Positions 4,419 to 27,872 of a stretch of 64,000 nucleotides of DNA are shown piece after piece; positions within the stretch are counted from its first letter, which is position 1, and each line of letters opens with the position of its first letter. A program made the position numbers and the translations under genes. The stretch is from the sequence record NC_049850.1; one strand, 5' to 3'. The notes below the pieces were generated by a model, which saw only the letters and a program-made list of their open reading frames with translations, was not told where the DNA came from and did no database searches.

Positions 4419-4453
4419 TTCGTTCCCCGTCTGGGTTTGTTGAGCATGTACAA

Positions 4454-4510
4454 ATGATAGCGGCCCCGATCGGGGCCGTCAACAATAACCCTTCACTTTA
4501 TGGGGTTATT
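4454..4510 (-). promoter_or_regulatory. early promoter TTGACG-N17-TATCAT with perfect palindrome GGCCCCGATCGGGGCC and 27-bp dyad 4484-4510
   Basis: read directly. Confidence 0.85.
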
Positions 4511-4713
4511 CAGTAGGCGAGCAGATCGCGCAGCGCGTCGCGGTTTTTCGACATATGGTCGATGATCGCGAGCCGTTCGCGTAACCCGATATTGCGGAAC
4601 GCGGGGCACCCGTCGAGCAGATCGCCCAGCAAACCGTCCCGATATTCGAGTGCCTTTTCCATGGTGTCGAATTGCTTGCCCCGCGTTACATAGACCCTCT
4701 TTTCTTCGATCAC
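4510..4713 (-). CDS. hypothetical protein (67 aa)
   Basis: GTG start with AGGGGA RBS. Confidence 0.6.
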   Translation of the reverse strand: MIEEKRVYVTRGKQFDTMEKALEYRDGLLGDLLDGCPAFRNIGLRERLAIIDHMSKNRDALRDLLAY

Positions 4714-4950
4714 GATAAATCCCCTGTGTTATGCGAGCCAGACAGCCAGCGATGCGACGCTGGAAAGCGTGGTGCGGGCCGAACGGTGCGCCTTGTGCCA
4801 CGCAGCGCGAGCCGTGCGCGCCGGGTGCGCCCAGTTAGCGCGATCCGCGTAGAGTGCGCACGCCAGCTTATAGCGTTCGTCGCGCAATTGTTCGATAGTG
4901 TGCATGATGGTGTTTCCGTGTGAAGGGGCGCACTGCGCCCCCTGTCTGGT

Positions 4951-5169
4951 TTAGCTGCGATCCATGATGAAGCGCGAGACAGCGCGGGGCGTGTTCAGAC
5001 GAACCGTTTCGTACTCCGTCCGGACAGCCGCGCCGTTATAGACGCGCACGGGGTCTTGCACTTCGATAGAACCGTCCTGCATGGATGCGACCGTGTAGCC
5101 GTCACGTTCCAGAATTGCCACGTAGGGCTTCATTGCGTGGAACAGTTCGATTGCGTTAGCTTGTGCCAT
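4951..5169 (-). CDS. hypothetical protein (72 aa)
   Basis: first gene after promoter 5206-5262. Confidence 0.75.
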   Translation of the reverse strand: MAQANAIELFHAMKPYVAILERDGYTVASMQDGSIEVQDPVRVYNGAAVRTEYETVRLNTPRAVSRFIMDRS

Positions 5170-5205
5170 GGTGCTGACTCCGTGCGCTGCGTTGAAAGTG
5201 ATTCC

Positions 5206-5262
5206 ATTATGGGGCGTGTTCGACGCCCCGTCAACAGTACCCGACTAAAACGCGGGGTCTTT
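5206..5262 (-). promoter_or_regulatory. early promoter TTGACG-N17-CATAAT with dyad
   Basis: spacer GGGCGT-CGAAC-ACGCCC; leader TCACTTTCAACGCA. Confidence 0.8.
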
Positions 5263-5425
5263 AAACCGCTACCAGTTCATCCGCCCGGAAGTGCCCGCGC
5301 ACGCCGTAGCGGTTTTCGCAGACGATGAATTCACCCTCGAAGCCGATCACGTGGATCGTTGCGGCATTGACGCCCGTAAGGATGCGAGCGCGAACAGCTT
5401 GGTTGAGTGCGAATGCGTGTTTCAT
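5261..5425 (-). CDS. hypothetical protein (54 aa, MKHAFALNQ...)
   Basis: own promoter TTGACG-N17-CATAAT at 5459-5487. Confidence 0.6.
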   Translation of the reverse strand: MKHAFALNQAVRARILTGVNAATIHVIGFEGEFIVCENRYGVRGHFRADELVAV

Positions 5426-5500
5426 TTCGTTGTCCTGATTGATTGAGGTATGGGCTAGATTATGACGGGGCTTTCTCACCCCGTCAACACCTATTTTTGA

Positions 5501-5779
5501 TTATTCTGCGTCCGTGTCCGCTTGTTTGACGAGGTAGCCCCAGCCTTTGTAATCCGGATCGGTTTCCGCACGATAGAACCCTTCCGCAGCCAGTGCCGAC
5601 AGGTGCCCGGCCCATTGGTTCGCGTTCATCACGTCGCGCACGCTGTCATACGCTGCATGCAGTTCGATTGCGCCGTTTTTGTGTTCGCGTGCTTCGATCA
5701 TGAGTGCCAGCTTTGCGCATAGTGCCAGATTGCCCGCGCGCTTTGCGATCTTGAGGCAGTGACGAGCGACTTTCGACAT
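5501..5779 (-). CDS. hypothetical protein (92 aa, MSKVARH...)
   Basis: GGAG RBS; promoter TTGCGC-N18-TACTAT with dyad at 5828-5882. Confidence 0.7.
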   Translation of the reverse strand: MSKVARHCLKIAKRAGNLALCAKLALMIEAREHKNGAIELHAAYDSVRDVMNANQWAGHLSALAAEGFYRAETDPDYKGWGYLVKQADTDAE

Positions 5780-5947
5780 GATGAACTCCGGTTTCTGGTT
5801 AGCGGTTCGTCGTGAACCAATGAACGTATAGTAACACGCGAAAAGGGGCGTGCGCAATACCCCTACAGAAAATAGGGTTATTGCGTCACGCCCCTTAAAC
5901 GGAGTCGTTATTCTGTGCCAGTCTAGGCCCGGCTCTTACCCGGAAAG

Positions 5948-6241
5948 TCAGCCATTTTTCGCCCCTTTCTCTACGTAATCGAGCCCTACCACGCAGCACG
6001 TCCGCGCGTCAACGATGCTATCGTCTTCGGCAAACGTGAATGCCGGGTGATCCGTATGCGGGTTGATCGTAACACCCGTAACCGTGTTGATGACTTCCCC
6101 GCCCCGGAATTTGTTGCCGCTGCGCTTGATGACGCGACGGCCGATAACTGCCGTGTAGTCGTCCGGATCGTCGCCCCATTCCGGGGTAATCTGGATTGCG
6201 CTGTACTTGCGCAGCAGCACACGTGTTTTCTTGTAGGCCAT
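5948..6241 (-). CDS. hypothetical protein (97 aa)
   Basis: AAGGGG RBS after stop of upstream gene. Confidence 0.7.
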   Translation of the reverse strand: MAYKKTRVLLRKYSAIQITPEWGDDPDDYTAVIGRRVIKRSGNKFRGGEVINTVTGVTINPHTDHPAFTFAEDDSIVDARTCCVVGLDYVEKGAKNG

Positions 6242-6250
6242 GCGCCGCCC

Positions 6251-6667
6251 TTACGCGTAGACGATGCGCCCGAGCGCCGCCGCCTGCATGATAACATCGG
6301 CCGTATCAGCATCGATGTGCGCCGTATCGCCTTCACGAATCGCGTGCAGGATCGCTGCCGCATAGTGCGGGGCCGCTTGCGCGTGGTCTGCCTTATCGGT
6401 CATGTCCCCGAGCAGCACCCGGCGCATGCCTTCCGCGATTTCGGCCGTCCCGATTTCGCACGTGCTCAGGGGTGTATCGCCGTCCCCGAACTCGTCCACG
6501 CGCACGCGATCCGGATACGTGATTTCGTGCTCGTCGGGTTCGGTGCGCTTCGTCACGTCGAATTCGCCCCAGTTCGGGGAGTAGCCCGTAATCGCCATGT
6601 CGATGACTTCACGGCAGAATTGCGCGCTCACGTCGAGCGTAAGCGGAATCAAGTGGCTTTTGGTCAT
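6251..6667 (-). CDS. hypothetical phage protein (138 aa) ending IDADTADVIMQAAALGRIVYA
   Basis: GGAG RBS; C-terminal motif recalls a widespread phage early-gene family (not verified). Confidence 0.75.
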   Translation of the reverse strand: MTKSHLIPLTLDVSAQFCREVIDMAITGYSPNWGEFDVTKRTEPDEHEITYPDRVRVDEFGDGDTPLSTCEIGTAEIAEGMRRVLLGDMTDKADHAQAAPHYAAAILHAIREGDTAHIDADTADVIMQAAALGRIVYA

Positions 6668-6701
6668 GGTGTACTCCGGTTCGTTGCGTGGTATATGGTT
6701 G

Positions 6702-6953
6702 TTACTGCGTGTCGCTGTCGTCGTGTTCCGTGCCGTCGTCGCCCGCGCTGTCGTCGTCGGCAAACTGCCCGAGCACGTAATCATTCGCGAGCCCGATAAT
6801 CCGGTCTTCCGCGTCTTCCGCATCCATGCCGTGCAGTTCGTCGGCCGTGAACAGGATAACCGCGTAGCCCCGCGCCTTCAGACCGCGCAGCATCGCGATT
6901 TCTTCGGGCGTCAGGTCGTTTTGTGCTGCGTTCGTGTTCGTTGCGTCGGTCAT
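6702..6953 (-). CDS. acidic hypothetical protein (83 aa, MTDATN...)
   Basis: GGAG RBS. Confidence 0.7.
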   Translation of the reverse strand: MTDATNTNAAQNDLTPEEIAMLRGLKARGYAVILFTADELHGMDAEDAEDRIIGLANDYVLGQFADDDSAGDDGTEHDDSDTQ

Positions 6954-7005
6954 GATGTACTCCGTTATGTAATCGATGGGGGCCGCGCTAGGCCCCTTGG
7001 TTTGG

Positions 7006-7203
7006 TTACTGTGCCGCTTTCTTCGCCTTGTCTGCGGCCCGTGCACGTCGGCAATGTTCGCATTGCTCGCCCGGCTGTGCCGCATCAAAGAACGGGCCCG
7101 ACACAAGGCCGTTAAGCGTGTCGCGCTTTTGATAGCCGCGCGCATAGCAAAGCGTCATCGTTGCGCCATTCTTGAATTTAGCTACCACGTGAAGCTTTGC
7201 CAT
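7006..7203 (-). CDS. hypothetical protein (65 aa, CEHC)
   Basis: first gene after promoter 7238-7294. Confidence 0.65.
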   Translation of the reverse strand: MAKLHVVAKFKNGATMTLCYARGYQKRDTLNGLVSGPFFDAAQPGEQCEHCRRARAADKAKKAAQ

Positions 7204-7237
7204 TTTGCGCCCCTGCGTTTCGTTGATCGATGGCTCT

Positions 7238-7294
7238 ATTCTGGGGCCCGCGTTTCGGGCTGTCAACAATACCCGACTAAAACGCGGGGTTATT
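7238..7294 (-). promoter_or_regulatory. early promoter TTGACA-N17-CAGAAT with dyad 7268-7294
   Basis: read directly. Confidence 0.8.
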
Positions 7295-7991
7295 TGGTCG
7301 GATGCCGGTCGATACAGGCTTGCGCTGCCTCGTCTACCGTGTCGAACAGGCCCGAATCCTCAACCCAGAATCGCGCGCTGTAACGATAGTTGTCGCCGAT
7401 AGGCTGAATCGCGAATCCCAGTTCACTGCACTGCGTAATCAGGCTCTGTGTATGCTGTTCGGCATCGCGCTTGCGTTGCACGTCGAAATGCGCGCGCATC
7501 AGTTCCCGAACGAGCCCGGTTCGCGCGCTGTCCATCGTCTGAAACGGGCCCGCGATGTTACGCTGTGCCGTTACGTCGAACACGTAGAAAGGCGCGTCGC
7601 GGCCGTCGCCCTGTAGCGTGCCATCGTCGGCCGTGCCGTCGATTACCAGACAGTTACCGTCGGCCGTGTAGCCGGTGCGCGCTTCGTCCAGTTCGCGAGC
7701 CTTTGCGCTCGCGCGCTTAACGGCCGCCCATGCGGTCGGGGCGGGGGCTGCTGCATCTTCCGTCTTCGCGACCGGTTCGGCATCCACGCGCGGCTGATGG
7801 TAGCGGCTGACAGCTTCCGCAACCTGTGCGGCGTCGATTTCCGACGCGGCGGACACCACGTGACCCTGTTCGATCAATTCGGCCATATAGCAGCAGACAG
7901 CCATTTCGCTATCGCCTTGCGGATGCGCGGTGCGGCCGATGTAGACGATCCAGTTACCGTGCATGTTCTTGCGTGCGCGAATCAGGGACAT
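7290..7991 (-). CDS. multi-domain hypothetical protein (233 aa)
   Basis: GGAG RBS; promoter TTGACG-N17-CAGAAT at 8027-8055. Confidence 0.8.
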   Translation of the reverse strand: MSLIRARKNMHGNWIVYIGRTAHPQGDSEMAVCCYMAELIEQGHVVSAASEIDAAQVAEAVSRYHQPRVDAEPVAKTEDAAAPAPTAWAAVKRASAKARELDEARTGYTADGNCLVIDGTADDGTLQGDGRDAPFYVFDVTAQRNIAGPFQTMDSARTGLVRELMRAHFDVQRKRDAEQHTQSLITQCSELGFAIQPIGDNYRYSARFWVEDSGLFDTVDEAAQACIDRHPTK

Positions 7992-8081
7992 GATGCTAAC
8001 TCCGTGTGTTGTGTGTCGATGTGTGTATTCTGGGGCCTATAGTCGGCCCCGTCAACTATTCCCGAGTAAATCACTCAGGTA

Positions 8082-8297
8082 TCACATAGTGCGTTGCCGT
8101 GTGTAGAGCACGCGGTTAATGTCGTCGCGGATGCACACACGATAGGGGCCGTCGCGTTCCACTATGTAGGCCCGCCACTTGTGAATTACGATCGTCCGCG
8201 CGCATCCATAGGTAATCATCTTGTGTTCACCTTCGTCCGCGATCATTTGCGCGTCCTCTTCCGCCAGCTTGGCGGGGCCGTCGTCGTTCGTGCTCAC
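8082..8297 (-). CDS. hypothetical protein (71 aa, GTG start)
   Basis: 3' part of ORF 8082-8576; GGGGG RBS. Confidence 0.5.
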   Translation of the reverse strand: MSTNDDGPAKLAEEDAQMIADEGEHKMITYGCARTIVIHKWRAYIVERDGPYRVCIRDDINRVLYTRQRTM

Positions 8298-8308
8298 GGT
8301 CGCCCCCG

Positions 8309-8746: not shown

Positions 8747-8832
8747 AGCAATTCCCCTTTCCTGTGATTGGTGAGTGTGTCAATCTCAGTATAGGATGCA
8801 CGCGCGAAAAGCAAAGGCGCACGTGATCCCGG

Positions 8833-9090: not shown

Positions 9091-9092
9091 GA

Positions 9093-9496: not shown

Positions 9497-9520
9497 GGTG
9501 TTTCCCCTTACGCGTAGGTG

Positions 9521-9709
9521 TCAATCTGGCGTTGCGCGAATTCCAGCGCATCCGCCCATGTCGGGATAGACGAGAAAGACCACGTTTGCACGCGGATTCG
9601 ACGGCGCGGTAAAGGCGCACGACGTGCAAACGTGAATTTGCGGGCCCGGGCGTCGCGCGTCACTTTGCAGCCACTGGCCCTTTTCGCGAAGCACCTTATC
9701 CTTGTCCAT
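9521..9709 (-). CDS. hypothetical protein (62 aa, MDKDKV...)
   Basis: promoter TTGACG-N17-TAGGAT with dyad at 9745-9803; AGGG RBS. Confidence 0.5.
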   Translation of the reverse strand: MDKDKVLREKGQWLQSDARRPGPQIHVCTSCAFTAPSNPRANVVFLVYPDMGGCAGIRATPD

Positions 9710-10134
9710 TTCCCTACCCCTTACCATTCGTTGACAGTAACGATATCCTAGTCCACGCAATCCGCCACGTCAACAATAACCCCTCGTTTCAGTCGGGTTT
9801 ATTTCCGCACCGAAACCCACACAATCCGGGGTTATTCCCGTGCCCGGCTAACCACTCGCAGCACGCTACTTTCTCCATTAAAAACGCGCGCTACAGCCCC
9901 TTAAACGGGCCGCCTGTAGTTTCCCCTACCCATCAGTCAATCACGCGCACCGGGCCGCCTGAGCGCGTTCTCTGCGTCTATGCGTTCGTCAGGAATGCAG
10001 CGCAATGCGGGGCCCGGGCCCGGGCCATTGATCGGGAATCCTGACGATCCGGGCTCGCGCGATTAGATGATTCGCACTACCGACGAATGCGGTACTTGAC
10101 GCGCTGCCCCGTCTGTGCCGTGTGCGATGCCCCG

Positions 10135-10380
10135 CCCCATCCGGTTTTCGTTAGCACAACTAATCGCGCTCGTCAACTATACCCCCTCCCCCCATCCGGT
10201 TTTTAGCACCCCCTCCCCCTGCCTGTGCTAGTAAGGTATCCTCCCAAAACCCCGTTTTCGGGCCCGGGGTTTTTCGTGAAATAAACAGGGGTCTAATTCG
10301 CGTGCGTAAGGTATCCCCCGGATGCGGGGTGCGGGGCCCGGGGTTTGTGCTCGGGGAAACAGGGGGTCTAATTCGTGTGG
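10135..10380. repeat. non-coding tandem repeats (about 75-bp unit x2) and four C-tracts
   Basis: GTAAGGTATCC, GGCCCGGGGTTT and AACAGGGG(G)TCTAATTCG each occur twice about 75 bp apart; CCCCATCCGGTTTT x2. Confidence 0.75.
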
Positions 10381-10453
10381 GTGACGCGCGTATAAACGCA
10401 AAAAGGGGAACCCCTATCATGCAGGTTCCCCTATCTGGCGTGCGTGCTGCGTT

Positions 10454-10750: not shown

Positions 10751-10765
10751 GTGGGCCTCTACCTG

Positions 10766-10957: not shown

Positions 10958-11035
10958 GGTGCGTCCTGTGGGGCTGGGTTGTTAGTTGATGTGGTGATTA
11001 TGGGGGCGGCCCGCGCCCCCGTCAACAATACCCCT

Positions 11036-12043
11036 TCAGTGCGCTGGGTTATTCGCGACGAACGCAAGGGCCTGTGCTTCTGCGGCCTGCACGCGTTTAT
11101 ACTCGGCTTCGCTGACAGCCCGGCCCCCGATCCGGATACGCGCCGGAAACTGGTTGAAAATCTCACCCCGAACACTCGTATTGATGATGATACGCTGGTT
11201 GATTACCACGCGTTGACCGGCGGGCGTGCGGCCCGTCAACAGGAATTCGTAACCCGTGATCGATTGGAAAGCCGGGTCTTTCAGGGCCCCGGCCTTAATC
11301 ATCACCTTGTGTTCTACGCTTTCTTGTACTTGCTTTGCGTACTTTTCCGCGTGCTCGCGCATCCACTCGGCATTAATCGAGCCGTCGCCGTTCGTGCAGT
11401 GGCGCAGCACCGTATCGTAAAAACGCGACCATTCCTTGTCGTGACGAATGCCCCTGAGCACATAGCCAAACTTGGCGACGGCAGCAGCGTGGCGGGCCTT
11501 CACATAATCTTCAAACTGTGCGACGAGCGCCGGGCCCTGTGCATCGAGTGCGGCGCGCACCACTTCCGACAGGACGGGGGCGGACATGGTGCGTTCCACG
11601 TGCGCGCGTTGTGCGGTTGCGGCCCGCGTCTCGCGCTTCGCGATACGAGCTTTTGCGGCCTTCAACGCGGCTTCAACCTCAATCCATTCCGCAAACAGGT
11701 GCACGGCCGTGCGTGCGACAGCGTGTCGGCCAGCGAGTGCGACAGCCGCCCGGTGCATGCGCTTCACGCTCGGCAGGTTCGACGCATCATAATACAGGTC
11801 TTGCAATTCGTCGGGGCGCGGGAACGCGAGCGCCAGATAGGGGGCGCGCACCGCCCATTCCATCATCGTTTCATAGACGGTCGTGAGTTCCGCGCGCATT
11901 TCCTTGTAATCGACGGCGCGCATGCTATCGGTGCCGCAAAGCTGGGCGATACGCGAGTCGAACGCGTTGATAGCACGTGCATTGTGCGGACGATCCGACA
12001 GCAGAATGCGGGCGAGCGTGGCACGCGTGTTTTGCAGTTCCAT
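11036..12043 (-). CDS. hypothetical protein (335 aa, MELQNTRA...)
   Basis: GGAAGGGGAA RBS; promoter TTGACG-N17-TACTAT with dyad at 12080-12136. Confidence 0.85.
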   Translation of the reverse strand: MELQNTRATLARILLSDRPHNARAINAFDSRIAQLCGTDSMRAVDYKEMRAELTTVYETMMEWAVRAPYLALAFPRPDELQDLYYDASNLPSVKRMHRAAVALAGRHAVARTAVHLFAEWIEVEAALKAAKARIAKRETRAATAQRAHVERTMSAPVLSEVVRAALDAQGPALVAQFEDYVKARHAAAVAKFGYVLRGIRHDKEWSRFYDTVLRHCTNGDGSINAEWMREHAEKYAKQVQESVEHKVMIKAGALKDPAFQSITGYEFLLTGRTPAGQRVVINQRIIINTSVRGEIFNQFPARIRIGGRAVSEAEYKRVQAAEAQALAFVANNPAH

Positions 12044-12131
12044 GGTCTTTCCCCTTCCGGGTTCGTTGAGCATGTACAAATAGTAACAGCCCCAATCGGG
12101 GCCGTCAACAATACTTGAGTGAAGCGCGGGG

Positions 12132-12488
12132 TTATTCGCCCCGCTCGTATTCCGCGCACGCTTCGGCGTGCTCTACCGGGTGCATGCGTTCCAGTGCTTC
12201 ATCGCGTTGACCGGCCGCCAGCAGGTTTTTAAATACCCGCTTGAGTGCCGCGCTTCGCGCCTCGTCCGGATCGACAGGGGGCAGCGTTGACGCCTGAGCG
12301 TCGAATTGTGCGCGCCGCCCCCATTCACGGGCTTGCATAAGCGCCATGTCGGCTGCGCGTACCGCGTTCGGGGCTTCGGCCGTATACGACATTGCGGCGT
12401 GGCTCACGTGCCAGACCCCGGCCCGGGGCCGGAACATGAAGCCCATGGCCCGGGCTACGCGGATCATTTCATTCTGTGCGTCGGTCAT
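12132..12488 (-). CDS. hypothetical protein (118 aa)
   Basis: GAGGAA RBS; stop inside dyad. Confidence 0.75.
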   Translation of the reverse strand: MTDAQNEMIRVARAMGFMFRPRAGVWHVSHAAMSYTAEAPNAVRAADMALMQAREWGRRAQFDAQASTLPPVDPDEARSAALKRVFKNLLAAGQRDEALERMHPVEHAEACAEYERGE

Positions 12489-12534
12489 GCTTTCCTCTAC
12501 CGTTCGTCAGGGGGCCGTCAGGCCCCCGTTCCCC

Positions 12535-13038: not shown

Positions 13039-13185
13039 TTTCAAATCTCCGGTTGGTGAGAGTGTGCTACGTGGTTAAGTGGGTGTTGCGTGATTCGTTA
13101 AGACAGATTGTAGGGGACTAAATTCGCTTCGTCAACTAATCCCCTTCAATTTGTGGGGTCTTTTTCGCAGACCCCAGCGCGTTCG

Positions 13186-13437: not shown

Positions 13438-13560
13438 TTTCATTCCTTGTTTGTGACGCGTTAATCGATGAAACAGATTGTAGGGCAATCATTTTGCAGC
13501 GTCAACAATAACCCTACAATCTGCGGGGTCTTTATCGGCAGACCCCGGGGCCGGTGCGCC

Positions 13561-14160: not shown

Positions 14161-14271
14161 GATCCTAACTCCGTTTGATTTGTGTTGCGTTGTGTGAATC
14201 GATGTATGAATTATGCCCGCGTCTTTTTGGCCCGTCAACAGTACCCGAGTATTTTAGTCGGGTATTGTGAC

Positions 14272-14295
14272 AAAAAGAAGGGGCCCATAGGCCCC
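14272..14295 (-). terminator. intrinsic terminator GGGGCC-TATG-GGCCCC-TTCTTTTT
   Basis: immediately upstream of next promoter dyad. Confidence 0.75.
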
Positions 14296-14301
14296 AGCGC
14301 A

Positions 14302-14832: not shown

Positions 14833-14897
14833 GGTGCGCCCCTCTAGGCTTGGTGTTGCGTTGAAAGTGAGTCTATTGTATGCGGGCCCTGTCAGCA

Positions 14898-14963
14898 CGT
14901 CAACAGTACCCGAGTATTTTAGTCGGGTACTGATGCCAAAGAAAAGGGGCCTAGGCCCCTTCC
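14898..14963 (-). repeat. terminator+dyad+-35 cassette, near-identical to 17404-17470
   Basis: CGTCAACAGTACC(C/T)GAGTATTTTAGTCGGGTA..GCCAAAGAAAAGGGGCCTAGGCCCCTTCCC in both; dyad part also at 14233-14266. Confidence 0.85.
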
Positions 14964-14964
14964 C

Positions 14965-15771
14965 TCAATTAACGGCAGTCGGTCGCGTGATAACCGTCTG
15001 TTTCAGGTCGTTATAGAGTTTGTGCTCTTTGACTGCGGCCCGGACGTGCACGCGGTCGCCTTCCGCGCGGAACAGTCGGCAATTGCCCTTGTGAACAACC
15101 GTAGCCCCCGACACGTCGCGCATGATCGTAAGGTAGCAGGGGCCAAACGAACCGAACGCGGCCCCCGTGTCGAGTGTGATGATTTTTTGAATGGTCATTT
15201 CGAATTCACGACGTTCCCCGACGGTGCCAAGGTATGCCGCGTTTTGCACCTGCTCGGCGCGGGCGCGAAGGCGCAAGACGGATGCTTGCGCGGCTTCTGC
15301 CTGTGGCCCTGTCAGGTAACCCCATTGTTCAAGCTTGCCAGCAAGCGACGACAGAAACTCGTTGTCCGCGAATTCATCGAGCATTCCAGCGAGCCCCGGA
15401 TATTCGGCGTCGAATGCTGCGCGCTTGTCAGCCTTCGCGGCTTCGCGTTCGGCGTCGCGGGCCGCATGTTCGGCCGCGCGCTTTTCCTGTGCCTTGGCTT
15501 GGCGCTTGGTTGCGGACGCAACCAGCTTTGCGAGTCGTTCGCCCGTGTAGACTTTCGTCAGGGCCGGGGTGCCTTGACCCGAACCCCCGCACTCGTAACA
15601 CGTGTAACCCGTGTATGCCCATGCGTTCGAACGCCCGGCCCCGCCGCAACGATGGCACTTGCGGGGTTTGTAGAACGAGCCCGAGCCCTTAGCCGGGTCA
15701 TAGTTCGTCGGAATCAGGCCCGCGTATGCCGTGCCGTCGCGGTAGAAAAGAGCGGGCTTTGCTTGTTCCAT
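14965..15771 (-). CDS. DnaJ-type Cys-rich zinc finger plus probable C-terminal OB-fold protein (268 aa)
   Basis: CHRCGGAG and CYECGGSG repeats; C-terminal YLGTVGERREF...VKEHKLYNDLKQTVITRP pattern; promoter 15803-15859. Confidence 0.7.
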   Translation of the reverse strand: MEQAKPALFYRDGTAYAGLIPTNYDPAKGSGSFYKPRKCHRCGGAGRSNAWAYTGYTCYECGGSGQGTPALTKVYTGERLAKLVASATKRQAKAQEKRAAEHAARDAEREAAKADKRAAFDAEYPGLAGMLDEFADNEFLSSLAGKLEQWGYLTGPQAEAAQASVLRLRARAEQVQNAAYLGTVGERREFEMTIQKIITLDTGAAFGSFGPCYLTIMRDVSGATVVHKGNCRLFRAEGDRVHVRAAVKEHKLYNDLKQTVITRPTAVN

Positions 15772-15857
15772 CGTTGCACCTGTTTGGTTAGTCGATGGAC
15801 AAATAATAACGGGCCCCGAAAGGCCCGTCAACAATACCCGACTAAATCGCGTGGTCT

Positions 15858-16547
15858 TTACAGCACATCCTTAAATTCGTCGTTCAGTCGCTTACGCTGG
15901 GCGCGCAGTTTCTCAATATGGTTACGCGTTTCTTCGCGCCAGATACCGGGGGCATTGCGCACGATCCAAAGGTCGCGCACACGCTGTTCCGTTTCTTCGA
16001 TATCGGATTCGAGCCGTCGGGCCGCTTGCCATTTCGCGTCGTATTCCCGTTCGTCTTCCGCGTAGACGCACGCATGCGAATCGGCGTCCGCTGCGGCAGC
16101 GCGGTCACTGTCATAGACAGTCGTGAACACGACGTGTCCATCGTTGTCTGACGTGGTGTAACCCGCGAGATAACGGCCGTGCGTCAGGCGCACAAAGAAC
16201 GGACGCGCTACCTCCGTCCCGTCTTCGTCCGTGAACCATCCTTTGTGGCTGGCGTAATTGCGTCCCGAGCGCGGGTTTTCCGTTTCGTCCAGATAACACA
16301 CGCGGCCGGGCAGCGCGTCATCGTCAAACGTCGAATAGATATCGATATTGCGGCCGTATTCCGTGTTGTAGCCCGCGCTCAGGCCCGAGTCGTTCGACAG
16401 GAAATTTCCGAACCGGGCCGAACGCCAATCGATGAGTCGGCCGCCCTTCCCCGCGTTCACCTTGGCATTGTGGGATTCCACGTAGTCGCGAAGGTATGCG
16501 AGCCGCTTCGGTGCGCCAATGCGAAGGTTGCGATAGGTCGTGTTCAT
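15858..16547 (-). CDS. hypothetical protein (229 aa) with C-terminal coiled coil
   Basis: promoter TTGACG-N16-TACAAT with dyad at 16593-16648. Confidence 0.8.
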   Translation of the reverse strand: MNTTYRNLRIGAPKRLAYLRDYVESHNAKVNAGKGGRLIDWRSARFGNFLSNDSGLSAGYNTEYGRNIDIYSTFDDDALPGRVCYLDETENPRSGRNYASHKGWFTDEDGTEVARPFFVRLTHGRYLAGYTTSDNDGHVVFTTVYDSDRAAAADADSHACVYAEDEREYDAKWQAARRLESDIEETEQRVRDLWIVRNAPGIWREETRNHIEKLRAQRKRLNDEFKDVL

Positions 16548-16681
16548 AATCGAATCCGTTTAGTTAATCCCGCGTCGCGCGGTATGAAAAGGATTGTACG
16601 CGTCTTATTCCCTGCGTCAACAATAACCCCGCGCAATGAGGGGTTATTGTTGAAGCACTCCGTAGAGTGCGGGCCACGCCC

Positions 16682-17348: not shown

Positions 17349-17443
17349 GATGTGCCCCGTTAGGCGTTGTCGATGTGTGAAGTATGCCCGGGCCCGTGAG
17401 GCGCGTCAACAGTACCTGAGTATTTTAGTCGGGTATTGGTGCC

Positions 17444-17518
17444 AAAGAAAAGGGGCCTAGGCCCCTTCCCTGTCACTTCCTGCCCGTACCGCTTGCGCGG
17501 GGCGGTCTCACGCCATAC
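17444..17518 (-). ncRNA. candidate small RNA (~75 nt)
   Basis: TTGACA-N17-TACAAT promoter (17525-17553), then CCGC-GCAA-GCGG hairpin and a terminator; only ORF is Met-Ala-stop. Confidence 0.5.
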
Positions 17519-17563
17519 ACTCCCATTGTAGCATAGGCCGCCGCCCCTGTCAAGCCCCGTCCC

Positions 17564-18913: not shown

Positions 18914-19318
18914 GGTCTGTTCCTCCCCATTACGCGAGTTTGCCGCGTGCGTCGTGCTTCTCACGGCGTGCCTTGCGTCGCGCCTGTTCACGCGTGCGCA
19001 CCGCGTCGGCATCGCGTGCCGGGGCTTTGCGCGAGATACGTTCGAAATGTGCGTTGCCTTGCATTTGCATGATGGTTCCCTTAGAGAAGGTTTGTTAAGT
19101 AAGTGTGTGTATCATACCGGGTTTAATTTCGTCCGTCAATTAAACCCGTACTAAAATTAGGCTTTTATGCTGCCTGCATGCCGCGCACTTGCCGGATTGC
19201 ATCGCGCACTTGCTCACGTGCGAACGGGAACCGGCGCAGGTTGCGCAGACCGTAATTGATGCCGATAAATTCGATTGCCGTTTCGATATCGCGGAAGGTC
19301 TTCATAGTGAACTCCAAA

Positions 19319-19762
19319 TTAAAAGAAAATGACGGTGCGCGCTTCCTCGTCAAAATCGACGCACATATTCCAATCACGGCCGCGCGACGTGACCATATCG
19401 CATGCGTCAGTCAGCCGCGCGCCCAGACCCCCGGCTTTCAGTTCCGCGCGATCCCAGAAACCCGTGCCGTGACCCTGACTCGTCAAATACAGGTCATGCC
19501 CGAAAGACGCGAAGGGCCATTCGTGCGCACGCGCGCCCCCGAAGTCTTGCGCGCAGCGGTCGCCATAACCGGGGCGCGTAACCGCATCGATGCAATCCGC
19601 ATGATACGCGAGCAGGAACGCACGAACGCCCTTTTCCACGTGTGCGCGCCCTTCCGGAGTCGCTTCGTAGTCGCTCGATTCGTCGGGGCTGTCGGCCCAG
19701 ATAGCCGCGATGATGTAATGCCGAACGATGATATCGATTTGCGCGTCGCTGAAGTGTTGCAT
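19319..19762 (-). CDS. hypothetical phage protein (147 aa) with GHDLYLTSQGHGTGFWDR motif
   Basis: GAGG RBS; promoter TTGACG-N18-TACAAT with dyad at 19804-19861; motif recalls a widespread phage family (not verified). Confidence 0.85.
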   Translation of the reverse strand: MQHFSDAQIDIIVRHYIIAAIWADSPDESSDYEATPEGRAHVEKGVRAFLLAYHADCIDAVTRPGYGDRCAQDFGGARAHEWPFASFGHDLYLTSQGHGTGFWDRAELKAGGLGARLTDACDMVTSRGRDWNMCVDFDEEARTVIFF

Positions 19763-19856
19763 GGTTGCCTCTAGGCGGTTAGTGCTGCGTTGAAAGTGAT
19801 GCTATTGTATGCGGCCCGTTCTAGAGCCGTCAACAATAACCCACTAATTCGAGGGG

Positions 19857-20138
19857 TTATTCTTCGACCCACAAGCTAGGATCGCACGACGTTTCAATCC
19901 GGAAGTGCGACGCATCGCGATAACGGCGCACAAACAGGCGGCCGTGCTGCGCGTAGGTCATGCCTTCAGTCAGCCATGAAACATGGTGCAAATCGCCCGG
20001 CATCGGGGATTTGAGCGGCCCTGCGTGCGTGACACGAACGGGCGTGAATTCGTCAGGGAACAGCCGCGCATCGTAGCGCGTGCGCCGATAGTAGAGGGTC
20101 TTACCATCCACGTAATCCTGAAAGCATGCGGGTTTCAT
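19857..20138 (-). CDS. hypothetical protein (93 aa)
   Basis: AAGGGG RBS; stop inside dyad. Confidence 0.7.
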   Translation of the reverse strand: MKPACFQDYVDGKTLYYRRTRYDARLFPDEFTPVRVTHAGPLKSPMPGDLHHVSWLTEGMTYAQHGRLFVRRYRDASHFRIETSCDPSLWVEE

Positions 20139-20298: not shown

Positions 20299-20334
20299 TT
20301 CGTTCCCCTTCGGGTTCGTTGAATCGATGGACAA

Positions 20335-20392
20335 ATAGTAACAGCCCCTTAGAGGGGCCGTCAACAATAACCACAAATAATTTGTGGTTATT
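20335..20392 (-). promoter_or_regulatory. early promoter TTGACG-N18-TACTAT with near-perfect 27-bp dyad AATAACCACAAA-TAA-TTTGTGGTTATT
   Basis: read directly. Confidence 0.85.
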
Positions 20393-21127: not shown

Positions 21128-21140
21128 GGTGTCAAATCCC

Positions 21141-21832: not shown

Positions 21833-21929
21833 GGTCAGCCCCTTTAGGCCGGTCTTTACTGCGTTGAAAGTGATTCTATTCTATGGGGCCTGCTGCCCCG
21901 TGTCAACAATAACCCCAGACTTTACTGGG

Positions 21930-22286
21930 TTATTCGTTGTCCATCATCCCGAGCCGGGCCCGGATCATTGACAGGCGTTCCGATACGGGCACGGCACGGC
22001 CGCCGCCCAGACGAACCCATCCCGCGCCAGACGGGCACGCGTCAATGTCATGCACCCCGGAATAAGCGGCGCAAATGTCGGCCGCACTGTTAGCCTGTAG
22101 CAGCGTATAACCGGCCGTGCGCGCGTGCTGCGCAGCATCCCGGCCTGACTCCCACACGCGAGCATGCGCCCGGCCCGTCTTCTGTTCACCCTCCCCTACA
22201 AACTGCGCGGGGCCCTGCGCGACGACACGCAGACGATAGCGCGTCGCGCCTTCGTGTTTCTGACGCATCACATACACTTGTTGCAT
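21930..22286 (-). CDS. hypothetical protein (118 aa)
   Basis: promoter TTGACG-N17-CATACT at 22322-22378; terminator 22384-22412 upstream. Confidence 0.7.
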   Translation of the reverse strand: MQQVYVMRQKHEGATRYRLRVVAQGPAQFVGEGEQKTGRAHARVWESGRDAAQHARTAGYTLLQANSAADICAAYSGVHDIDACPSGAGWVRLGGGRAVPVSERLSMIRARLGMMDNE

Positions 22287-22428
22287 ACCCTTAAAACTCC
22301 CGTTCGTGAATCGATGAGTGCAGTATGTGCGCGTGTGCCCGTACCGTCAACAGTACCAGACTAATTAACTCAGGTATTAGGGCAAAAGAAAAGGGCCCCT
22401 AGGGGCCCTTTTGCGAGTGCGCGACGGA

Positions 22429-22836: not shown

Positions 22837-22956
22837 GGTGTTTACTCTGCTGTTTGGTTAAGGTGTTACCAGTATAGAGGGGAGAATTCCCCGCGTCAAG
22901 AATAACCCCATATAGTATAGGGCTATTTTTGACGGGGCCCGAAAGGGCCCGGGCCG

Positions 22957-23346: not shown

Positions 23347-23433
23347 TCGTTTGATTCCTTATTCGTTCAGAGAGATTACATTGTGCCGGGTAGTGTTCTC
23401 TCTGTCAACAATACCCGAGTGCGGCGCGGGGTC

Positions 23434-23808
23434 TTACTTCGTCAACGCGCCCGACAGGCTTTTGACGCATGCGCCGTAAGCGGGCTCGCGTGCATCGTCG
23501 GGGCTCGCGCCCTTGAATGCGGGGCTGCTGTAAATCAGGGCCGCGTTACCCTTCATCAGATCGACAAGCGGACGCGCGACGCCCGCAAACGTGCGTTCGA
23601 TATCGGCCTGCGTTTCCGCGAGCGTCACCCCGCTATCACGTGCGCGAACCGACAAAACCGCAACGTCAGCAACGCCGTTACACGTCTGCGAAATGTTCGC
23701 CTTTTCTTCCGCCGTGAGCGGCGCAGCCTGCGCCGGAACCCCAGCCCCGCACGATGCGGCAGTCGCGAGCGCAGCGAACGCGACTGCGGAAACGGTACGT
23801 TTGAACAT
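23434..23808 (-). CDS. exported protein with Sec-type signal peptide (124 aa)
   Basis: MFKR + hydrophobic core + A-x-A; GGAG RBS; promoter 23848-23905. Confidence 0.7.
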   Translation of the reverse strand: MFKRTVSAVAFAALATAASCGAGVPAQAAPLTAEEKANISQTCNGVADVAVLSVRARDSGVTLAETQADIERTFAGVARPLVDLMKGNAALIYSSPAFKGASPDDAREPAYGACVKSLSGALTK

Positions 23809-23889
23809 GCTTGATTCTCCGGTTATGCGTCTGTTGAAAGTGAGTCTATTGTATGCGGGCCCGTGTAGGCCCGTCAACAATAAACCCCT

Positions 23890-24246
23890 TTACCGTAGGG
23901 TCTTCGCGATCCGACGCGCCCAGCGTCGAGCATAGCCCGCGCGTCGGCATCCGTGCGGATGAGTCGGCCCCGTGCCCTGCCCAAGACAATACAGATAGGC
24001 GCGAAGGGCTGCATTGATGCTTTCCGGGGTTGCACCCAGTTCACGCGCAAGGTTTTTGCGCCTCAGCCTGAGCAACGCCATAAGGCTGTCTGCCTCATAC
24101 GTGTAACGTTCGTGTTTCAGGCCCGCATGCGCCATGATGCACGAATCGATTGAGACACGGGAGCGCGGTTGCATGGCGGCGGCCCAGCCCGGAACCGGGG
24201 CCTTTCTTTGTCGCCAATATTCGGCGTGTTCACCTGTCACGATCAT
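23890..24246 (-). CDS. hypothetical protein (118 aa)
   Basis: ATGA overlap with upstream stop. Confidence 0.6.
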   Translation of the reverse strand: MIVTGEHAEYWRQRKAPVPGWAAAMQPRSRVSIDSCIMAHAGLKHERYTYEADSLMALLRLRRKNLARELGATPESINAALRAYLYCLGQGTGPTHPHGCRRAGYARRWARRIAKTLR

Positions 24247-24539
24247 GACTTGAGTCCCCGCACCAAACGGCAGACACCCATGTACTGACGGCGACAATCG
24301 GCCAGCCACGCGGCCCATGCTTCGGGGTATTCCCGGCCCCAGCCGATATAGAACCCGATCAAATCCTGATCGCGCCTTTGATTGCAGGACAGGGCGTCCG
24401 ACAACGCGAATTTATCCACGTCGAGCCGTTCCAGTTGATCGCGGATCGAATCGACCAACATGCACCCCGAGCCACGCACCCATGCATAAAACTCGAATTC
24501 GTTGATCGTGTCATCAGCAAACTTCACTTCGTTTTCCAT
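24243..24539 (-). CDS. hypothetical protein (98 aa)
   Basis: leader AACGAACCCGAAGGGGAACGAAG-ATG; promoter 24575-24631. Confidence 0.7.
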   Translation of the reverse strand: MENEVKFADDTINEFEFYAWVRGSGCMLVDSIRDQLERLDVDKFALSDALSCNQRRDQDLIGFYIGWGREYPEAWAAWLADCRRQYMGVCRLVRGLKS

Positions 24540-24626
24540 CTTCGTTCCCCTTCGGGTTCGTTGAGCGTGAAACCAGTATAGACGGGCACGCGGCACACGT
24601 CAACAATAACCCCGTGCTCTATAGGG

Positions 24627-25049
24627 TTAAATCAAAATCATTTCCGTGTAACCCAGCGTCCGGGCAATTGCCAGCAGCGCATCATTCCCCGCGCCCTGTT
24701 CGCACGACTCAAACGCGATTGGTGCGCCCGCGTCGTCGCGAATCTCGATACCTGCCGACACTAGGGCCCGGTCGAACGCGAGCCCGAACGATTCACGTCC
24801 CGCGCTTGTCTTCGCCACGCCGTAACCCGACGTGGTAGCGGCCCCGCAACGAACCCACAGCGACGCGTAGAGGTTCGTTGCGGACGTGCTGCGCGATGCC
24901 CAGTAACGCAATTCGCACACGTGTTCAAGCTTACCCGTTACCGGGTTAAGGGCAACGAGGGAAACGGTGCGGATGCGTTCCTTCGTCCCGTCGTGCTGCT
25001 GCGCGTTATCCTGTTCACCCTTAAACGTTACTTGCATACGTTGCCTCAT
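24627..25049 (-). CDS. hypothetical protein (140 aa)
   Basis: ATGA overlap. Confidence 0.7.
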   Translation of the reverse strand: MRQRMQVTFKGEQDNAQQHDGTKERIRTVSLVALNPVTGKLEHVCELRYWASRSTSATNLYASLWVRCGAATTSGYGVAKTSAGRESFGLAFDRALVSAGIEIRDDAGAPIAFESCEQGAGNDALLAIARTLGYTEMILI

Positions 25050-25549
25050 TCCGCCGCATTCTTGCCAAGGTGTTCCGCGAGCGGTTCACCATTTTTCATC
25101 AGCGTAACCGACTCCCCGGCCGTGCGCCCCGTACCCTCGTCGGACGTGATGACCCATGCATCATAGGCTGCATACGCGGCCGTCCGGTCGTCGCCTTCGT
25201 ACACAGTGCCGACGTTACCGACGATGACGAGATAGCCCGTGTTCGTCGGGTTCGCGATGCCTTCAATGACTTCGATAGCTTGCTCGCGCGTGCTGTAGCG
25301 GTGGAACTCGCCCAGCGTTTCCACGTTGCCGGTTTCCCCGTCGATCTTGCGCACCGAAAATTTCGTGATCCCCGACGGGTTCGTTTCTTGCGAAACGAAA
25401 TAGTACGAGCCGAAAATCAGCCAGCCCCGGGCCGGAAGTCGGGTCTTGAAAAACTTCATTGCATCAGCATCGAACCAGTGCCCGTTAGGATTCTTTTCGG
25501 CGTAGTGCGCGCGAATCGTGGACATGGTGACGGTCTTAGCGTTTTTCAT
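25046..25549 (-). CDS. hypothetical phage protein (167 aa) with GHWFDADAMKFFKTR motif
   Basis: AAGGGG RBS; promoter TTGACA-N17-CATAAT with dyad at 25586-25642. Confidence 0.8.
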   Translation of the reverse strand: MKNAKTVTMSTIRAHYAEKNPNGHWFDADAMKFFKTRLPARGWLIFGSYYFVSQETNPSGITKFSVRKIDGETGNVETLGEFHRYSTREQAIEVIEGIANPTNTGYLVIVGNVGTVYEGDDRTAAYAAYDAWVITSDEGTGRTAGESVTLMKNGEPLAEHLGKNAAE

Positions 25550-25819
25550 TTGGTGCCCCTTTAGGCGTCGTGATTGGATGACTGAATTATGCGCGGGCCC
25601 GTCTGGCGTGTCAACAATAACCCCAAAATTTTTATGGGTATTCAGGCAAAGAAAAAGCCCCGGCTGGGGCTTATAGGATGCGGGCCGCCTGTATGGCCGC
25701 CGCTCGCGTTCTGGCCGTCCCGTGAGACTGGCCCCGCACGTCGAAAATTTCCCATAGGCGACGGTCGCCTACGCGCTGAACATAGCCGCGCAGCGTTCCC
25801 CGCTCGTCATAAACGGGAG

Positions 25820-26497
25820 TCACGACCCGCGCTCGTCTAGCACTTCCGCCGCTTGCGTAATCGACAGGTTCGGCACGCCGTCAACCGTCCACGCTTCGAC
25901 TGTCTGCCCGGCAACGCGCGACAGTCTTACGGTTACTTCGATGCCGCGCAACCGGCCCGAGCGCGATGCCCCGGCCGCCGCCGCTACGTCGGCCTTTTCC
26001 GCGAAGCGATCGACCAGCGATTCTGCAAAATCGACCAGTTCACGGGCCGCCGCGAGCGGGATAGCCTTATGCGGTTGCGGGGCCGCGACGCGCGCAACCT
26101 CGTTTTCGGCGTCGCGTTGATGGATGAACGCGCCCCGACCGTCAACATACCAGTTACAGACAATCCAATCACGGGCCCGCGAATAGATCGCGCAGCACGT
26201 GACAGGCACGCCCCCGATATCTGCGGTTTCCGCGTGGTCGTCCTTCGACGTGCGGGCAATCTCGCGCGCGTCTTCCGCGAGTTTCGACACTTCGGCCGAA
26301 ATTTGATCGATGGTCATTACTTGTCCGTTCAACATGGTTTCGAATTCCATTTCATTTTCGAGAAAATACAGTTCGGGGGTGCCCGCGATAAGATGCCGGG
26401 CCGCCCGCGCTTGCTCGGCAGGCCATTCCGGATTATCGGGGAATGCGCGCCGGGCCCGGGCTAGTTCGATCCGCAAGTGTAGCGCGAGCGGTGACAT
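25820..26497 (-). CDS. multi-domain hypothetical protein (225 aa)
   Basis: TAATG overlap with upstream stop. Confidence 0.65.
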   Translation of the reverse strand: MSPLALHLRIELARARRAFPDNPEWPAEQARAARHLIAGTPELYFLENEMEFETMLNGQVMTIDQISAEVSKLAEDAREIARTSKDDHAETADIGGVPVTCCAIYSRARDWIVCNWYVDGRGAFIHQRDAENEVARVAAPQPHKAIPLAAARELVDFAESLVDRFAEKADVAAAAGASRSGRLRGIEVTVRLSRVAGQTVEAWTVDGVPNLSITQAAEVLDERGS

Positions 26498-26982
26498 TAT
26501 GCGACGAGCCGCTTAACGGGTTCAACGCTGCGCGGGTGATAAACCCGGCGCAGTTCAGCCAGCAAGGGCGCGTATTCTTCCGGGGTTGCCAGCTTCAAAT
26601 CGCGGCCCAGACTGCGCGACACTTCCCCATGCTGCCCCGTGTGCATGTAGGACATCACGTTACCCGGGTTGCAGTCTTTCGCGCTGTTACAGAAAAACGC
26701 GATTACGTAACCCTCGCGAAACTTGCGGAACACGACACGCAACGCGGGCGGCGCAAACTTCGCGGCCCCGTAGCGCTGCGCGTCTTCGGACAGGGCGCGC
26801 ACTCCCGAGGGGTCATGTGCATCCCGCGAGCCGTGAACGTCGACCAGATCGCCGCTGCGCTTATCGAATTGAAACGTGATCGGAACGCGGGGGCCAAACC
26901 CGGGCCATTTGCGCGCGAACGCTTCAACGTCTGCGGTCGTGCACTGCACGGTAAAGAATGCCCCATTATCGTATGCTCGCAT
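26497..26982 (-). CDS. two-domain hypothetical protein (161 aa) with SYMHTGQH...ATPEEYAPLLAEL motif
   Basis: GAGG RBS; promoter 27024-27080. Confidence 0.8.
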   Translation of the reverse strand: MRAYDNGAFFTVQCTTADVEAFARKWPGFGPRVPITFQFDKRSGDLVDVHGSRDAHDPSGVRALSEDAQRYGAAKFAPPALRVVFRKFREGYVIAFFCNSAKDCNPGNVMSYMHTGQHGEVSRSLGRDLKLATPEEYAPLLAELRRVYHPRSVEPVKRLVA

Positions 26983-27078
26983 GGTTGCCTCTAGGCTGTT
27001 AGTGCTGCGTTGAAAGTGAAACCAGTATAGGACTGGGCCGCCGCCCCGTCAACAATACCCGACTAAATCGCGGGGTCT

Positions 27079-27450
27079 TTATTCCGTGCCACGCAAGCGA
27101 CGCACAATTTCCGCGTGCGAAAGACCCGACATAAGGCGGTCAATTTCCGCTTGCTCGTCTGCCTGCCGTCGCTCGTCTTCTGCTGCCTGCCTAGCGAGTT
27201 CTGCGCGCCACTCTTTCAGGGCCCGCGCGCCCTTTTCCGTAGTGCGCGGATCAACCGACAGATAGAGCGTGACTTCGCGCCCCTCCCGGTCAACGAAAAC
27301 GGGCGTGCCGCTATTTTTCACCACTACCGTGAAATGCGACTGAACCAGACGGTTTACGGTGTCGGCATCGATAGCACCGCCAAACGATCCGCCCACAACC
27401 TTACGCGTGTTGTCGCTGTAGAGACGCGTGTGATAGCTGATATTGCGCAT
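27079..27450 (-). CDS. hypothetical protein (123 aa)
   Basis: promoter TTGACG-N17-CATACT with dyad at 27484-27540. Confidence 0.75.
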   Translation of the reverse strand: MRNISYHTRLYSDNTRKVVGGSFGGAIDADTVNRLVQSHFTVVVKNSGTPVFVDREGREVTLYLSVDPRTTEKGARALKEWRAELARQAAEDERRQADEQAEIDRLMSGLSHAEIVRRLRGTE

Positions 27451-27527
27451 GTCAAACCCTGTAGGTGCGTTGAAAGTGATACCAGTATGGGGGCGGGCCG
27501 CCGCCCCGTCAACAATACCCGAGTAAA

Positions 27528-27872
27528 TTAATCGGGTTTGTCGTCCTGCACTTGTGCGCCCGGCCGCGCCAGCTTTTCCAGCTTGGCAAGCAACGAAACC
27601 GCGTCCTTAACGTAGCAGGTGCACGCGGGCCGCTTCGCCTCATACTCGGCCACTGCCTGAGCATGCGCCGCCCGGTCTCCGTCCTTCACACGGCCGCCCG
27701 GCCCGCGCTTAGGGCCGCCCCCGAAAATCTGTTGAGCGTGTCGGTTGTGAACGGCAACCGCGCAGCTATAGGCGTGCATCGGATGCCGGATAACCGGGCC
27801 AAAGATCGCGAGCACGTCCCGCGCTAAATCGGCTTGCCCGTCGTCGTATGCTTGATTGTATGCGTCTTGCAT
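27528..27872 (-). CDS. hypothetical protein (114 aa)
   Basis: AAGGGG RBS. Confidence 0.65.
   Translation of the reverse strand: MQDAYNQAYDDGQADLARDVLAIFGPVIRHPMHAYSCAVAVHNRHAQQIFGGGPKRGPGGRVKDGDRAAHAQAVAEYEAKRPACTCYVKDAVSLLAKLEKLARPGAQVQDDKPD

Follow-up and report, generated by a model that had tools for sequence, protein, structure and literature searches.

Promoter-early stem-loops (PeSLs) were defined in T4-type phages as composite blocks with sigma70-like early promoters and an A+T-rich stretch ahead of the -35 box that contains the upstream stop codon (Arbiol et al. 2010, PMC2839356). Their stem-loop lies most often between the -35 box and the -10 box, often as G-runs followed by C-runs, and a ribosome-binding site (RBS) and start codon stand at the 3' end (PMC2839356). 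In the T4-type coliphages RB49 and phi1, PeSLs are concentrated before orphan genes in plastic regions and mediate insertions and deletions (indels) that leave chimeric PeSLs behind (PMC2839356). PeSLs are further marked by promoter strength and terminator or attenuator activity seen in experiments, and by mini-circles that arise when neighboring cassettes exchange. In the closely related pairs T4/PST and KVP40/nt-1, they were described as composite promoter-terminator motifs at which exchange takes place between unrelated genes (Comeau et al. 2014, PMC4122927). The haloarchaeal virus HGTV-1 has also been likened to them, as it carries, according to the passage of PMC3950731 that cites it, a promoter-like motif and an inverted repeat before most left-arm open reading frames (ORFs). 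Here, we describe an array of similar blocks, which we call cassettes, in the Burkholderia phage BcepSaruman (genus Sarumanvirus; MK552140.1, 263,735 bp), of which bases 1-64000 form the window analyzed, with 100% identity and unchanged coordinates. We consider it likely from the sequence that the leftward block at 1.9-28.3 kb is an early array of ~30 PeSL-type cassettes, and that recombination between cassettes is one route of gene turnover there, though not the dominant one.

BcepSaruman (hereafter Saruman) is a jumbo phage of Burkholderia cenocepacia with a genome of 59% G+C. Its sister phage BcepSauron (Sauron) is ~96% identical to it across their common parts, and the tail sheath points to phiRSL1 (the nearest relative), BCSR5, and Motura as further relatives. 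The genes annotated at 1041-28202 encode small hypothetical proteins, and nearly all of them are minus-strand genes. Outside this block, small genes form long operons with stop-to-start packing. The cassettes, all on the minus strand, run from 1906 to ~28270 as ~30 composite blocks of ~90-130 nt, each preceding a single gene or a group of two to four genes. A preliminary description of the window had rightly recognized an array but placed it at 4419-27540, which is too short, and had missed the promoter nature of its blocks.

Every block is predicted to be a host sigma70-type promoter, and this promoter appears to be the main organizing feature. Read along the minus strand, the order is a dyad, G + TTGAC(G/A), a spacer, the -10 box, a conserved transcript start, the RBS, and the ATG. 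The dyad has arms of 9 + 9 nt around a 9-nt loop, abuts the -35 box, and usually holds the TAA of the preceding gene; in at least 15 of 27 cassettes, the preceding stop codon is found within the 5' arm or next to it, which agrees with the earlier remark that such codons often fall inside the dyad. The -35 box is mostly TTGACG, and the spacer of 17 ± 1 nt is GC-rich and itself a hairpin in about two-thirds of cassettes. The -10 box takes the form (T/C)A(T/C)(A/T)(A/C)T, i.e., TAnAAT-like, and the RBS is G-rich and often sits within a small hairpin just ahead of the ATG. Over the 37 nt upstream of the promoters, G+C content is 45%, compared to ~59% for the genome.

A consensus scan of 8.6-28.5 kb returned 29 promoter-like sites, compared to 8.0 ± 2.7 in shuffled sequence, and 25 of the 29 were on the gene strand. 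With a stringent promoter pattern, we found 29 matches in Saruman and 30 in Sauron, while a reversed-pattern control gave 2. All pattern matches lie 35-150 nt upstream of a start codon, and 25/29 fall within 5-28 kb. The same pattern had no match in phiRSL1 and one match each in BCSR5 and Motura, and this cassette form therefore appears specific to the Sarumanvirus lineage. If the boxes work as predicted, host RNA polymerase would fire each unit straight after infection through these sigma70-type promoters, and the hairpins would attenuate read-through from the preceding unit. In the related phage Matilda, terminal-segment genes peak at the first sampled time point, an observation that would suit an early block here without being evidence for one.

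The conserved transcript start follows a general motif, CAYnnnTCAAC, that begins 4-6 nt after the -10 box. The leaders A and B of the preliminary description, together with a CATCGAT form, are sub-types of this motif within one architecture. Of 79 promoter-like sites genome-wide, 12 have CATCGA within 16 nt past the -10 box (0.67 expected), some of them far outside the block, and CAAC is present in the leader of 19/29 cassettes (~10% expected). Leader A (TCACTTTCAACR) was found, as had been proposed, in seven copies on the minus strand (5190, 14859, 19788, 21862, 23832, 27008, and 27468); shuffles averaged 0.53 matches, and 0/100 reached seven. These belong to cassettes c5234 (5170-5262), c14903 (14833-14965), c19833 (19763-19861), c21906 (21833-21934), c23877 (23809-23905), c27052 (26983-27080), and c27512 (27451-27540). 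The copies at 19759-19799 and 26979-27019 are near-identical up to the ATG, as first noted (98% over 41 nt, or 40/41 positions between the leaders of c19833 and c27052). All five copies of leader B were likewise recovered before 3462, 4418, 12043, 20298, and 24539, in c3526 (3463-3554), c4482 (4419-4510), c12108 (12044-12136), c20364 (20299-20392), and c24603 (24540-24631). CAYnnnTCAAC could act in promoter escape, as a signal at the 5' end, or as a site for a regulator.

Two annotated gene starts touch these leaders. The start given for Saruman_052 (TTG, 20334) falls in the -10 region of its own promoter and looks wrong; ATG 20298 agrees with the cassette as well as with the annotation of Sauron. 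For Saruman_066, the probable start is ATG 26982, directly after the common leader A, as in Sauron.

Both hairpin positions fold more stably than shuffled sequence. The spacer that separates the -35 box from the -10 box has a mean fold of -8.5 kcal/mol, compared to -4.0 in shuffles (sd of the mean 0.38) and to a mean of -2.5 kcal/mol at 50 promoter-like sites from other parts of the genome (p = 6e-6 vs. cassettes). The 37 nt upstream fold at -8.2 kcal/mol vs. -5.0 in shuffles (sd 0.41), and whole-cassette folding gave z from -1.7 to -5.4 in 11/12 cassettes. When the 27 dyads were aligned without gaps, 73.7% of cells were paired, compared to 68.8 ± 1.8 in shuffles (1/500 as high), and the register pairing positions 7-15 with 25-33 beat every slid register (best at slide 0). 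AU/CG and CG/GC swaps occur at three pairs. These swaps largely divide two or three arm families, which moderates the covariation support for dyad pairing; we regard that support as moderate. Several imperfect dyads resemble chimeras of a type-1 5' arm and a type-2 3' arm, as in c7266 (7204-7294), which carries a CATCGAT leader.

Some cassettes also resemble terminators more directly. Three spacer hairpins with TTAyTATTTGT downstream score as intrinsic terminators; a terminator-like score was obtained for c15831 (15772-15859), where the spacer hairpin runs into a T-rich -10 region. Five long-form cassettes have an extra canonical GC hairpin and T-run just upstream of the dyad, so that terminator, dyad, and promoter follow one another: c14238 (14161-14300; rho-independent terminator, type-2 dyad), c14903, c17409 (17349-17471), c22350 (22287-22403), and c25614 (25550-25672).

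The dyad, perhaps together with CAYnnnTCAAC, could instead be an operator, bound by a dimeric protein of the phage or the host that turns the early promoters off or on. Its geometry of 9 + 9 + 9 and its distance to the -35 box are fixed in 27 cassettes, it is kept even directly after a canonical terminator, its outer arm positions (ATA...TAT) are conserved in sequence beyond what pairing would require, and the leader TCAAC is an inverted copy of the -35 box element GTTGA. However, the arm families differ inside with compensating changes, which a single protein would not tolerate, several dyads are chimeric or weak, and a candidate regulator was not identified. We judge an operator in place of a hairpin to be quite improbable, although the two readings are compatible and need not exclude each other.

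To what extent the cassettes exchange genes can be judged from the differences between sister phages. Saruman and Sauron are colinear over 1-29 kb except for six gene-content differences, here called events A to F. Public reads provided at least two additional Sarumanvirus-like phages from sequencing runs X1-X4, which were compared as assembled contigs. Run X1 is a relative from an activated-sludge metagenome with ~94% identity and contigs of up to 83 kb, of which one of 19.9 kb includes the slot of event D; X2-X4 are three small runs from one 2023 study.

Event E provides the clearest case. At Saruman 14889, Sauron has an extra 622-bp unit consisting of a promoter, a CATCGAT leader, the unrelated gene 041, and a stop codon within a dyad, with a cassette at both ends. 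Left of the -35 box, the Saruman promoter matches the upstream Sauron copy at 32/39 positions and the downstream copy at 13/39. Right of the spacer, the match is instead to the downstream copy (59/61) rather than the upstream copy (22/62), and the switch lies within 14 columns around TGTTGACG. Because X1 also has ~600 extra nt at this site, the simplest history would be a deletion in the Saruman line by crossover between the two promoters, and c14903 would be the chimeric promoter left by the loss of a Sauron_041-type gene unit. Through recombination between cassettes, at least one gene unit has thus been removed or inserted in full, and a chimeric promoter that is predicted to work was left behind.

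Two further events have one end at a cassette. In event D, gene 036 (Saruman 12114-12494) is swapped for 123 nt in Sauron. Similarity returns precisely with the TATTG that precedes the -35 box of c12108, in the common TATTGTTGAC, and the other end lies just beyond the hairpin after the stop codon of gene 037. This slot (12114-12534, minus strand) has three contents among the relatives: gene 036 in Saruman, the 123-nt form in Sauron and X2-X4, and 399 different nt in X1, which shares the breakpoint at 12113. In event F (Saruman 27877-28253, within a variable slot at 27877-28290, minus strand), gene 069 with its own -10 box and leader is replaced by an unrelated Sauron gene. One end is a dyad/-35 junction, again in the common TATTGTTGAC, with similarity back near 28254-28270, and the other is the RBS of the next gene.

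The remaining three events involve no cassette. Event A is a 298-bp deletion within a gene at Saruman 5923 that leaves an 11-codon stump, and event C is an extra Sauron gene within an operon at Saruman 10763. In event B, gene 032 (Saruman 9499-9710, vs. Sauron 9875) is missing in Sauron. Two neighboring coding sequences begin with 13 similar nt (ATGGAnAAGGnTA), and the junction falls there; short homology at gene starts can likewise delete exactly one gene. The preliminary description had proposed that the blocks act as recombination boundaries that shuffle and excise genes, and that breakpoints between relatives should map to them. This holds in full for event E and for one breakpoint each of D and F, but not for A, B, and C, and gene order is otherwise colinear. 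The proposed mechanism is therefore demonstrated by one event and plausible for two more but is not general, and excision of gene units through cassettes is plausible. Candidate joints with sides of 22-33 nt in the contigs of relatives were rejected as cross-matches between paralogous cassettes, as their loose ends match other Saruman cassettes.

Exchange is also suggested by likeness among the cassettes themselves. They share exact stretches of 10-32 nt, the longest matches between cassettes being 32, 30, and 28 nt; c14238 shares a 32-nt exact repeat with c14903 across gene 040, the two copies lying 665 bp apart, and c27512 a 28-nt one with c27052 across gene 067, at a distance of 460 bp. Their upstream, spacer, and leader parts are almost unlinked (rho ~0.18). 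Cassettes c14903 and c17409 have a likeness of 0.91 upstream and 0.50 downstream, and c19833 and c27052 have 0.12 in the spacer and 0.88 in the leader. The terminator and dyad block that had been reported as duplicated at 14898-14963 and 17404-17470 is indeed so (63/66 identity) and belongs to a 108-nt repeat of 81% identity. Between the sisters, the Sauron promoter of slot D agrees at 30/30 positions with that of another gene 8.6 kb distant, while its Saruman ortholog differs, and c23877 is identical at 62/67 positions to the Sauron gene 040 promoter, 9 kb distant. Taken together, recombination between cassettes also makes the cassettes themselves mosaic.

Many near-identical copies between unrelated genes could also be produced by self-copying small mobile elements, of the miniature inverted-repeat transposable element (MITE) or repetitive extragenic palindromic (REP) kind, that enter intergenic sites. 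However, target-site duplications and terminal inverted repeats are absent around the blocks, all copies are co-oriented with the genes and stand exactly between a stop and a start codon, and the parts of the blocks are independently mosaic. No transposase-like gene was among the 20 proteins scanned with Pfam. A mobile-element origin is accordingly so improbable that we give it hardly any weight.

A simpler alternative to PeSL-type exchange is that the cassettes are purely regulatory, as early promoters with insulating hairpins. Under this alternative, they would have no special part in recombination, breakpoints there would be survivors of selection, and their similarity would reflect functional constraint. 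Half of the local events and most events genome-wide have no cassette at their ends, an indel at 238378 also stops exactly at a -35 box where a second promoter copy is absent, and a cassette-free region is at least as plastic as the block. By contrast, the Saruman promoter of gene 040 passes from likeness to the upstream Sauron copy to likeness to the downstream one in the space of 14 columns around the -35 box and spacer, which is the signature of homologous crossover and not of illegitimate joining. Likewise, loops and unconstrained positions are identical in distant cassettes (the 32-, 30-, and 28-nt exact matches), and an orthologous promoter is identical to its paralog instead of its ortholog. 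We therefore find a purely regulatory role unlikely.

Still, several observations weigh against early PeSL-type cassettes as a route of gene exchange. Half of the local events (3/6) are unrelated to cassettes. Across the genome, Saruman and Sauron differ by 28 indel or replacement events. Only 5-6 of these end at a promoter-like site of any kind, and ~22 do not involve promoters. The block holds 6 events in 26 kb compared to 22 in 237 kb elsewhere, only a ~2.6-fold density, and the region at 208-234 kb, which has no dyad cassettes, holds 9 in 26 kb, more than the block. Selection would presumably leave breakpoints at gene and promoter borders anyway. Identity between the sisters ranges from 76% to 100% per unit, and in a likelihood test cassette positions fitted the divergence steps best of 41 shifts, yet 8.75% of random boundary sets did equally well and gene borders confound the comparison; we consider this fit weak. 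Among the dyads, 10-14 of 27 are unpaired at inner pairs, and many are thus imperfect. Because the dyad is retained in five cassettes despite a canonical terminator directly upstream, it may not be a terminator at all, and both promoter and terminator activity are what we infer for this phage from its sequence.

Five of the 28 events are homing-endonuclease genes (HNH, GIY-YIG, and others), which are mobile by a different route; these are present or absent at Saruman 89448-90324, 133421-134590, and 137421-138997 and at Sauron 116123-117261 and 126675-127230. With so few events at cassettes genome-wide, cassette exchange is therefore real but, of the gene turnover that separates the two sequenced sisters, it explains only a minority.

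A bolder extension is that the cassettes form alternative DNA and RNA hairpins in vivo, which would make them plug-and-play slots with the hairpins as recombination hot spots. Two features suggest it. A loop is exactly inverted between the sisters: in a long terminator hairpin at 5836-5895 (minus strand; Sauron 5911-5970), the 11-nt loop of one phage is the exact reverse complement of that of the other (TATTTTCTGTA vs. TACAGAAAATA), apparently a flip of the kind made by template switching at a DNA hairpin. In addition, the -35 flank pairs with the -10 box across the spacer hairpin: in the TACAATAG cassettes (c19833 and c23877), a TATTG that precedes the -35 box forms base pairs with the CAATA of the -10 box, so that the whole promoter lies in one long hairpin. 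If this extension were true, each slot would give any incoming ORF a stop codon, terminator, promoter, leader, and RBS. The hairpins could then serve as a switch for early transcription that is sensitive to supercoiling or read-through, and the double-hairpin variant would go beyond described PeSLs. We find this extension doubtful. A difference between Saruman and Sauron in the spacer of c27512 was also considered as a hairpin flip and was rejected, as the reverse complement fits 10/19 positions and the direct sequence 15/19.

The genes that the array carries are mostly orphans. Among the 20 largest proteins of the block, 19 had no Pfam family and one had a domain of unknown function (DUF). 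The preliminary description had placed near-identical blocks before unrelated genes, and this was borne out by all-against-all BLASTP of the 61 block proteins, in which zero pairs reached E ≤ 1e-3. It had also supposed that the cassettes amplify genes; since there are zero paralogs in the block, amplification is without support. The phage encodes recombination genes, namely a RecA-like recombinase (4e-13) and an Mre11-type nuclease. Two Sauron proteins annotated as RNA polymerase or sigma gave no match in a Pfam search. The orphan early genes of the array are candidates for host takeover or anti-defense functions.

The remaining cassettes, all on the minus strand, vary around the common plan. 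At the left end, c1906 (1849-1934; gene start 1848) has a dyad, its -35 box at 1906, an atypical 15-nt spacer, and a CATCGATTCAAC leader. A weak dyad with a TAA stop, a TTGACA box, a GC spacer hairpin, and TATCAT characterize c3526, and c4482 has a AATAACCCC/GGGTTATT dyad with the stop codon and a spacer hairpin of -16 kcal/mol. In c5487 (5426-5502), promoter and spacer hairpin are present and the upstream dyad is absent. The dyad of c16620 (16548-16654) is a perfect 11 bp, that of the variant c19139 (19071-19167) is weak, and c20364, whose leader B includes CATCGATTCAAC, has two strong hairpins (z -5.4). The others are c8055 (7992-8083), c9773 (9710-9801), c11025 (10958-11053), c13135 (13039-13163), c13505 (13438-13533), c22899 (22837-22950), and c23408 (23347-23436).

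Three noncoding stretches within or beside the array were also observed. At 17444-17553 (minus strand), a near-consensus promoter (TTGACA, 17 nt, TACAAT with TG) lies ~75 nt before the canonical terminator that belongs to the c17409 block. The interval contains no ORF, and this pair may be a small RNA unit. The 744-bp gene-free stretch at 9710-10453 contains repeated ACGCGAATTAGACCCC... units, G-runs, and a lone TTGACG, and is among the least conserved parts between Saruman and Sauron (~90% identity). At the right edge of the array (28254-29500), rightward promoter-like sites at 28294, 28451, 28555, and 28671 point into ~1.2 kb without genes that includes a palindrome array near 29320-29395. 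In this stretch, the leftward early block and the remaining genome diverge.

Other carriers of such cassettes were sought in several collections. A 16-mer scan of IMG/VR returned only Sauron and single chance matches, and a scan of metagenome contigs with a promoter-plus-flank pattern gave at least 120 single chance matches and zero arrays; none of these loci was used. A distant BLAST search of phage records with one cassette matched only Saruman and Sauron. In unrelated phage contigs with homologs of the N-terminal half of gene 040, similar cassettes were not seen.

The anatomy of the array fits the published definition of PeSLs, and the comparison with T4-type phages that had been drawn at the outset is apt. 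The sequence-level features are all present: boxes with 16-18-nt spacing, a stem-loop, the upstream stop codon, RBS and ATG, orphan cargo, and a chimeric indel. Location in a plastic region applies as well, although plasticity is only modestly raised in the Saruman block. PeSLs were defined in T4-type myoviruses, a lineage to which Saruman, as a member of Sarumanvirus, does not belong. Because this trait concerns the carrier and not the cassette, we class the array as PeSL-like, with a new lineage as its carrier.

The closest parallel is with RB49 and phi1, in which a gene between two cassettes in one phage (their ORFan192) corresponds to one chimeric cassette in the sister, as in event E here. 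Unlike those coliphages, Saruman is not T4-like, has 59% G+C, and holds its cassettes in one co-oriented 26-kb block. Most of its cassettes have two predicted hairpins, the dyad abutting the -35 box and the spacer hairpin, and their first 10-15 transcribed bases are conserved. The same differences apply to the T4/PST and KVP40/nt-1 pairs, and only about half of the local Saruman differences map to cassettes. HGTV-1 resembles Saruman in that a promoter-plus-dyad motif recurs before many small ORFs, which lie at one end of the large genome of a tailed virus. However, its motif is an archaeal TATA-box promoter, and the passage that describes it reports no sister-genome indel analysis.

The conserved transcript start has its counterpart elsewhere. 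In strong early promoters of phage T5, which depend on host polymerase, sequence conservation reaches beyond the -10 box to the first 15-20 bases of the transcript, and a role of this region in promoter escape was shown for T5. Saruman shares such a conserved start, as read from its sequence, but the T5 downstream-region consensus is different. We conclude that the array is best described as PeSL-type in a new phage lineage, with the double hairpin and the conserved transcript start as apparent local peculiarities. Its map of ~30 likely early promoters and unit boundaries should be useful for annotating, engineering, and trimming BcepSaruman. More broadly, the comparison would extend the PeSL idea to an unrelated high-G+C jumbo phage, in which regulatory cassettes may double as safe crossover points for swaps of orphan genes.

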